From Trichoplax adhaerens (lineage: Eukaryota > Animalia > Placozoa): a stretch of DNA of 64,000 nt. Both the position numbers and the translations under genes were made by a program. The notes below the pieces were generated by a model, which worked only from the letters and a program-made list of their open reading frames with translations, was not told where the DNA came from and made no database searches. Location: assembly GCF_000150275.1 (NCBI RefSeq), contig NW_002060960.1, forward strand, positions 248,001 through 312,000, given 5' to 3'. Shown here piece after piece: positions 21,433 through 23,074 of this stretch. The stretch's first letter is position 1. Each line of letters begins with the position of its first letter.

Positions 21433-23074
21433 ATGCCTTATGATACGAATAACGAATTTGCTAACCTCACACGTAAGTTGAATGATGATGAAATCGATTG
21501 CCCTGACAAAATTGGATACTTTAAATTGCGTGCTGGCGATAAAGGATATCTGACCGTTTTACCAGAATATAAAAGTAGTAAAATATTGAAGACCATGTTT
21601 GTTGGAGATCGTCGTATAGGCAAAAGTAAGTGAACATTGTGCAATCGATCGCCTTAGTATTACTTTAATATTCAAACATTATATAGTCTCTGATAACGTC
21701 GTCACGGTTCTTTAAAGAGAGTGAATTAAATGCTATTTTGATCAAAACTAATTTTAAATGGCTGGCGATTAGCGCTAAGCTTTACATCATAGTATAATCG
21801 AACCTATACCAATCAGCAAAGTCGTTGTTAATAGAACTTGCCGATAAGCTTGAATTGGATATAGCATAACTGCTATAAGCTAGTCTTATCGCTATCTAAA
21901 ATTTGAGCTTTATGTTCATATTTTAGAAAACATACACGTACATTAAGCTAGAATCCTTTCGATAATCAGTTTAAAATGAAAACGTCATGTAGTTCTTATT
22001 CATTTGTAGCAAGATGCTATACTTTAATTTTGTTCAATTACAGTAATATAGGCTAGTCGACGATTTACATGGGAAAACACATAGGAAATTTTATTTAAAG
22101 ACTAGGCTAGACTTAATATTAATGTGGATTAGAACTGAAGCTATGCAAACTAGTGTTTTGATATTCAGATTTTTCAAGCTAATATGAATAGCATGTCATT
22201 TATTAAAAGTAATTTCCTTGATTACGATTTTACAAGCTCTATTGATCCAAGTTAATAATTCATTTAACTGTAACTATTTATTTTTCTTGACTTTAGATGA
22301 ATTTATAATTCAGTCTACAGATCTTTCTGAAGCTAAAAAGAAAGACAAAAATATGTGTAATGACTGTGAAAATAAATCTGCAGTAGATTGCTTAGCTTGG
22401 AAATGTCATAAGAAAACGTATTTTCTTGCTGGTAAAAAGGCACCTGCACCGAAAGGAAAATGCTTTCAAATAAAAGATCGAAATTATGTCAATTTGGTAT
22501 TTGTGGTAAGTTTTTATAATACTGTATCGTAGATACTATAGCAAATATAATACCAGTAGGTGCTTTTCACAGTAAGCACTTTACAAAAAAGTTTTCACAA
22601 TTTGTTTTCGCTGTCTAAATATACCTTACGTTCATGTCTTTCCTTTAGGACAAAGATGTATATGATAAAACTACGGAAAAAGAGGAATACTTTGCATTGT
22701 ATAAGATAGACTTGAATTCGAATATCTATATATTTCGTCATGAACCATTCTACCTGAAAGAGGGAGTCAAAAACAAGTTCCTTTATACCATGCAATGCAA
22801 GCAAAAGATTTCAAAATCGAATAGCGATGACGACGATTGTAGTCTTACACGCGTACATACTTATCACACTATTGAAGATGCCGATTGTGGATCTAACCAG
22901 TATTTTCCCAGTGATACTCATTTTGAAAGGATTTGTGTAAGTGATGAAAAGCAAAGCAAGGATTGTAGTTGTCTAGCTTCAAAAAATGATAAAACAACGG
23001 ATATACTTGATTCTCAGACAAATGGCTCACTAGAAGAAGAAAGCAATACATTTAAAGAGGGCCTGTATGATTGA
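21433..23074 (+). CDS. IL-1-family-like beta-trefoil protein A (275 aa, no signal peptide)
   Basis: Exons 21433-21625 (ends phase 1), 22297-22505 (ends phase 0), 22649-23074; 828 nt open. Gene structure is strongly supported by paralog B. Family call rests on manual alignment to human IL-1beta, e.g. LVFV|DKDVYDKTTEKEEYFALYKIDLNSNIYIFRHEPF vs LQLE|[34 protein letters not shown]. Confidence 0.7.

Follow-up and report, generated by a model that had tools for sequence, protein, structure and literature searches.

Gene structure and possible affinities of a tandem pair of Trichoplax genes with an intron layout common to the IL-1 and FGF families

Two related genes were found in tandem on the forward strand of the window, the whole stretch of 64,000 nucleotides of Trichoplax adhaerens DNA that was analysed. 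The first, TRIADDRAFT_60839 (paralog 1), encodes XP_002116814.1 (record P0001), a protein of 275 amino acids, and has an orthologue, TrispH2_007245 (P0006), in Trichoplax sp. H2. Based on RNA contigs of runs X8, X10 and X11, the transcript starts with a non-coding exon at 20870..20908 (+), the 5' end of which is approximate as the contigs begin at 20870-20874; the sequence TATAAAT occurs upstream at ~20818. A 5'UTR intron of 515 nt with GT..AG borders (20909..21423, +), also defined by RNA contigs, is followed by the first coding exon (21424..21625, +; sequence and RNA contigs), which consists of 9 nt of 5'UTR, the ATG at 21433, codons for residues 1-64 and one base of codon 65. Its coding part, 21433-21625, measures 193 nt (64 codons + 1 base) and specifies a hydrophilic N-terminus with the motif DEID-C (residues 19-23); trefoil strands 1-3 are probably carried here as well.

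Coding intron 1 of this gene (21626..22296, +; 671 nt, GT..AG) is of phase 1 and splits the codon of N65 as a|at, directly before E66-F-I-I-Q. The central exon (22297..22505, +; sequence and RNA) is 209 nt long, that is, 2 bases plus 69 codons, and specifies residues 65-134, with EFIIQ near its start, then a variable loop rich in Cys, and YVNLVFV at its end. Coding intron 2 (22506..22648, +; 143 nt, GT..AG) is of phase 0 and lies between V134 and D135 (LVFV|DKD). The last coding exon (22649..23074, +; sequence and RNA contigs) contains residues 135-275 and the stop codon; its product probably comprises the remainder of the trefoil to about residue 231 and then an acidic tail. One run shows a poly(A) end at 23234, while other contigs of this gene extend further.

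Splicing was checked with Logan contigs from X8, X10, X11 and X14, each a run of a separate study and the last recorded as RNA, which were placed on 20700-23500. The joints 21625>22297 and 22504/5>22648/9, corresponding to the two coding introns, were present in the contigs of all four runs, and that of the 5'UTR intron (20908>21424) in three of them (X8, X10 and X11). Every joint was of the GT..AG type, and by script comparison the joined exons translate identically to XP_002116814.1. As spliced contigs join 20908 to 21424, the non-coding first exon of paralog 1 is real.

The second gene, TRIADDRAFT_60840 (paralog 2; gene model P0007), has the H2 orthologue TrispH2_007246 (P0002). A putative non-coding first exon was placed at 28560..28606 (+) by similarity to paralog 1 alone, namely a conserved donor and a matching leader ahead of the ATG, and the same similarity suggests a 5'UTR intron with its donor GT at 28607 and its acceptor at 29366. 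The first coding exon (29367..29574, +; sequence and gene model) specifies residues 1-66 plus one base; its ATG at 29376 is preceded by a leader of 9 nt, gaaataatc, identical to that of paralog 1. Coding intron 1 (29575..30348, +; 774 nt, GT..AG), identified from the sequence and from models P0007 and P0002, is again of phase 1 and splits S67 as a|gt, before T-F-E-I-L. A central exon of 215 nt (30349..30563, +), or 2 bases plus 71 codons, is separated by the phase-0 coding intron 2 (30564..30701, +; 138 nt, GT..AG), at LVFV|DKD, from the last coding exon (30702..31166, +); the first two of these rest on the sequence and the gene model, and the 3' end of the third differs between gene models. 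The first 277 residues were identical to P0007 by script comparison. The T. adhaerens model P0007 (309 aa) uses an additional donor at 31119/31120, whereas the H2 model P0002 (292 aa) lacks this splice and stays open to a stop at 31164-31166, so that the 3' end given here for paralog 2 is provisional. The preliminary description of this DNA had placed a phase-1 intron just before EFIIQ/TFEIL and a phase-0 intron at LVFV|DKD in both genes, and both placements were confirmed, by RNA joints for paralog 1 and by sequence and gene models for paralog 2. The non-coding first exon that it had thought probable was established in the contigs of three runs for paralog 1 and is suggested by similarity for paralog 2.

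Several other features were noted in the window. An intronless ORF of 381 aa lies at 8587-9732 (+), and an ORF at 43393-43914 (-) repeats the octapeptide INEDYLPF (24 nt) in about twenty tandem units. The segments 34753-35151 and 42379-42839 have a G+C content of 0.41-0.43 against ~0.32 and contain repetitive frames of the TVLYCTV type; these two segments and 43393-43914 are probably satellite-like repeats. By eye, two tandem genes at 44652-48455 and 50902-53848 (+) have ORFs like those of POT/SLC15 peptide transporters, an ORF at 1918-2226 (-) has a P-loop and resembles an Apaf-1/NB-ARC exon, and a membrane exon at 62943-63242 (+) is ABC-transporter-like.

The two proteins are 44% identical, with open frames, splice sites and alternating hydrophobic segments kept in both, and both genes are retained in Trichoplax sp. 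H2. Between the paralogs the introns are 69-76% identical (73% for those of the 5'UTR), compared with 66-75% for the coding exons, and dN/dS in the trefoil region is ~1.1. A transcript of a second organism (organism B, run X14) differs from the window at 14 non-synonymous and 3 synonymous sites. The rapid amino-acid change fits diversifying selection, with an immune or interaction role, and also fits relaxed constraint; the conservation of introns at this dN/dS may reflect either of these or conserved regulatory sequence within the introns. The Cys-rich loop after EFIIQ (22346-22384, residues 81-94) holds 8 of the 18 coding differences of the organism-B transcript and is hypervariable; seven of the eight are non-synonymous, in residues 82-94, among them a replacement of Cys85 by Phe.

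Relatives were sought in the genome, in protein collections and among domain models. The T. adhaerens genome (105.6 Mb, 1414 contigs) contains only these two copies. A HMMER search with the last exon against 1.84 billion representative sequences returned P0001 and P0002 plus three low-complexity matches, which were disregarded, and word-index protein searches with full-length P0001 and with a two-sequence profile returned the two Trichoplax clusters only. A word-index search with the last exon, under a length filter that left out the full-length protein, returned nothing; no relative outside Trichoplax appeared in any protein search. Full-length P0001 and P0002 had no Pfam domain of any kind at E values up to 10, and exon by exon both paralogs gave chance-level matches only. 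Against PDB sequences, P0001 and the profile gave either nothing or a chance match to uS17 at E 0.35. The Pfam IL1 model (PF00340) was without a match in a six-frame search of the genome, a result that adds little as the model was also silent in all control genomes. The FGF model (PF00167) matched neither P0001 or P0002 nor anything else in the Trichoplax genome, and the lectin and inhibitor profiles PF14200, PF00652, PF16850, PF10467 and PF00197 found no match in the two proteins at E values up to 10. A literature search with the gene names TRIADDRAFT_60839 and TRIADDRAFT_60840 returned nothing, and an IL-1 ligand is not among the entries of a survey of placozoan innate immunity (PMC6321704). 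The pair are thus real, spliced genes in tandem, found only in Trichoplax, with expression seen for paralog 1.

The fold was investigated using language-model, structure-prediction and threading approaches. The ESM Atlas holds its own model of P0001 (pTM 0.60, pLDDT 0.56). By language-model features, the 30 nearest named Atlas clusters all belong to beta-trefoil families, including RicinB_lectin_2, Ricin_B_lectin, Inhibitor_I66, Inhibitor_I48 (clitocypin), CDtoxinA, CCL2-like lectin and AbfB. Among the matches listed, feature scores were 0.89-0.91, with 83-121 of 256 features in common, values such as distant relatives or chance would give. The best structure matches of the P0001 model were Kunitz-type (TM score 0.47 by the query or 0.54 by the hit, residues 27-231), ricin-type and MIR trefoils, in alignments that cover these residues and beyond. 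Neither an IL-1 nor an FGF cluster was among the Atlas neighbours listed, whether by features or by structure; as the coverage of animal cytokines in the Atlas is uncertain, the missing IL-1 clusters count only mildly against an IL-1 identity. AlphaFold2 gave a pLDDT of 27.9 for the full-length protein with a two-sequence alignment and 28.9 for the trimmed domain with four sequences, low values which are to be expected as the alignments hold 2-4 sequences.

Thirteen conserved strand-like segments were identified between residues 27 and 231 in the alignment of the paralogs. A self-similarity dot-plot for three trefoil repeats gave no clear register, many of the strand-like segments being alike. 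The segments were assigned to twelve strands by threading with published trefoil strand patterns and minimal turn lengths (Blaber 2022, PMC9062101), a crude, home-made procedure. EFIIQ was stably placed as strand 4, with F in position 2 and I in position 4 (score 96.5, against at most 92 in other roles). With minimal turns imposed, YVNLV(FV) became strand 7 and YFALY strand 8, again with a score of 96.5, while other roles of YVNLV scored 86.5-92.5 (strand 9, 92.5; strand 8, 88.5). When the turn limits were switched off, solutions with YVNLV as strand 9 (95) or strand 8 (92-94) came near the strand-7 score. Intron 1 would thus, on the best reading, split the last loop codon before strand 4. For intron 2 the weakly favoured position is at the end of strand 7 or up to two residues beyond it, with a register uncertain by about two residues; as no confident three-dimensional model was obtained, the strand numbering at this intron is not secure. 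The central exon probably carries strands 4-7 under this threading, and the core, approximately residues 27-231, most likely folds as a beta-trefoil.

The positions of the introns can be compared with those of two cytokine families of the same fold. The human IL1B gene has an intron of phase 1 at QQV|VFSM and one of phase 0 at LQLE|SVD, the former splitting V40 of the mature protein and the latter following E83. In FGF2, one intron splits codon 60 just before strand 4 and a second separates codons 94 and 95, directly following strand 7; these sites appear to correspond structurally to those of IL1B. Some members of the FGF family, FGF1 and FGF2, are leaderless. A literature search returned no printed statement of the intron codons of FGF2. 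If the assignment of strand 4 is right, a match of codon and phase within ±1 residue would arise by chance in roughly 1 case in 100, by our own estimate.

Of the IL1B pattern cited in the preliminary description, the phases and the untranslated first exon are documented: the last three introns of IL-1beta have phases 1, 1 and 0 (PMC4880838), and the IL-1beta gene of pacu, organised like the human one, has exons of 74, 34, 73, 181, 168, 137 and 541 nt, the first untranslated (PMC7687281). The penultimate exon of 137 nt is accordingly one of 3n+2 bases. The two introns in the centre of the trefoil are reported to keep their phasing from human genes to the IL-1anc genes of cnidarians (PMC13736523). 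FGF genes have the same arrangement. The ancestral Fgf gene possessed two internal core introns (PMC11733497), and in FGF5 exon 1 contains 364 coding nt and exon 2 has 104 nt (PMC2754481), so that phases 1 and 0 flank a central exon of 3n+2 bases. As this layout is equal to that of IL-1, the introns do not single out IL-1. The preliminary description had regarded the coincidence as evidence of homology with IL-1: phases 1 then 0 and the non-coding exon do agree, while its specific reference to IL-1 was lost, the FGF introns matching equally well in documented phases and, for FGF2, apparently also in position. Nor is the agreement between the paralogs independent evidence, since they are tandem duplicates. 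The intron layout is compatible with the IL-1/FGF group of cytokine trefoils and lends some weight to a kinship with it, pointing at most to that group as a whole.

With IL-1 the Trichoplax pair shares a non-coding first exon and a central trefoil exon of 3n+2 bases that is preceded by a phase-1 and followed by a phase-0 intron. Further features in common are the probable beta-trefoil, the lack of a signal peptide, tandem duplication, rapid sequence change and a short N-terminal segment that terminates in a caspase-type DxxD motif. The hydrophilic N-terminus and the absence of a signal peptide were read directly from the sequence, and an unchanged DEID-C precedes the first probable strand by four residues in each paralog. 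In contrast, the Trichoplax central exon has 209-215 nt rather than 131-137 nt, the domain comprises ~205 residues rather than ~150, and there is no Pfam IL1 match, no (F/L)ES motif, no PDZ domain and no neighbouring ESD, GCC2 or TIR-receptor gene. At the place of (F/L)ES in strand 9, paralog 1 has the candidate strand IYIFRHE and paralog 2 has DIRFRAE, with F alone kept. No PDZ domain was found by Pfam in P0001 or P0002. For the synteny described for IL-1anc (ESD, GCC2, TIR receptor), the matches to Esterase, GRIP, TIR and TIR_2 all fell on contigs other than C1397, the one that holds the window, in exon-wise searches, which a very divergent neighbouring gene could escape. The conserved phasing, 1 then 0, of the two central introns is present in the Trichoplax pair and is a feature that FGF genes share. 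To FGF the pair is similar in its probable beta-trefoil and in having a central exon of 3n+2 bases between a core intron of phase 1 and one of phase 0, and differs in that this exon has 209-215 nt instead of a fixed 104 nt, that the loops are far longer and that an FGF signature is not visible.

The reading that we tentatively prefer, while giving it somewhat less than an even chance, is that the two proteins are very divergent members of the IL-1/FGF cytokine-type trefoil group which cannot be assigned to either family. That they are true members of the IL-1 family, namely placozoan homologues of IL-1anc without PDZ, leaderless, processed by caspase and signalling through an Ig-TIR receptor, appears unlikely. 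The intron phases and non-coding first exon as in IL-1beta would be explained in this way, as would the lack of a leader and the conserved DEID four residues before probable strand 1; moreover, the hairpin YFALYKIDLNSNIYIF together with the KFLYT strand was judged by eye to resemble strands 8-10 of IL-1beta. A minority of IL-1anc proteins do lack PDZ while the central phasing is conserved (PMC13736523). Against this, the Pfam IL1 model is without a match in the proteins or the genome, FRH or FRA stands in place of (F/L)ES, PDZ is absent, the ESD, GRIP-domain and TIR genes are on other contigs, the Atlas neighbours include no IL-1 cluster, and the intron layout is common to FGF.

A rather better candidate, yet still on the improbable side, is a defence trefoil of the cytoplasm, lineage-specific and unrelated to cytokines, which would serve as a lectin or protease inhibitor; in that case the intron match would be a coincidence permitted by a flexible alignment. 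Ricin-type lectins and trefoil inhibitors are the nearest Atlas neighbours of the pair by features and by predicted structure, with clusters of lectin, inhibitor, Kunitz and MIR trefoils closest, and fungal trefoil lectins and inhibitors are likewise leaderless and cytoplasmic. The absence of a leader, the tandem arrangement, the restriction to one taxon, the dN/dS of ~1 and the hypervariable loop are typical of defence effectors. These neighbours, however, are mostly bacterial, fungal or plant proteins, the lectin and inhibitor Pfam models failed to give even a weak match to the Trichoplax pair, and no QxW motifs or repeats are visible in it. The pair is not known to share its intron layout with ricin-type lectins or trefoil inhibitors, and, if strand 4 is right, the codon of intron 1 relative to the conserved aromatic residue is as in IL-1beta and FGF2, an agreement that is unlikely to arise by chance. 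Very improbable, in our opinion, is an orphan pair, young or decaying and merely transcribed, with no stable trefoil or with little constraint. The AlphaFold2 pLDDT of 28-29 in both predictions, a dN/dS of ~1.1 with introns as conserved as exons and the absence of homologues elsewhere would suit such genes, but frames, splice sites and the hydrophobic pattern have been kept at 44% identity, both genes persist in H2, spliced mRNA of paralog 1 occurs in four runs, and the Atlas features and model agree on one fold class.

Under the preferred reading of the pair as divergent IL-1/FGF-type trefoils, a protein of about 275-292 residues, having no signal peptide, would be synthesised in the cytosol and may then be shortened through cleavage at DEID by a protease of the caspase type. 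Its release would take place by unconventional secretion or upon cell damage, and the released protein may then act as a signal or alarmin.

Before the IL-1anc paper of 2026 (Fontenla-Iglesias et al., PMC13736523), IL-1 was considered a vertebrate invention. That paper reports IL-1anc proteins from cnidarians and bilaterians, but from neither sponges nor ctenophores; the conservation of IL-1 intron phasing across Eumetazoa was already published there, and neither Placozoa nor Trichoplax is mentioned in the text of that paper or of its preprint. Intron phasing alone is insufficient to call a protein IL-1. It is doubtful, in our estimation, that the pair descends directly from a single ancestor gene of IL-1 and FGF and has retained its exon layout of a phase-1 intron, an exon for strands 4-7 and a phase-0 intron; were this true, the common origin of IL-1 and FGF would be traceable through introns, and leaderless, caspase-trimmed trefoil signals would predate the split between placozoans, cnidarians and bilaterians. 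The history of IL-1 would gain one more phylum through a trefoil gene of this exon layout in a placozoan, and the intron phases, and apparently also positions, that IL-1 and FGF have in common constitute a testable argument for their common origin.
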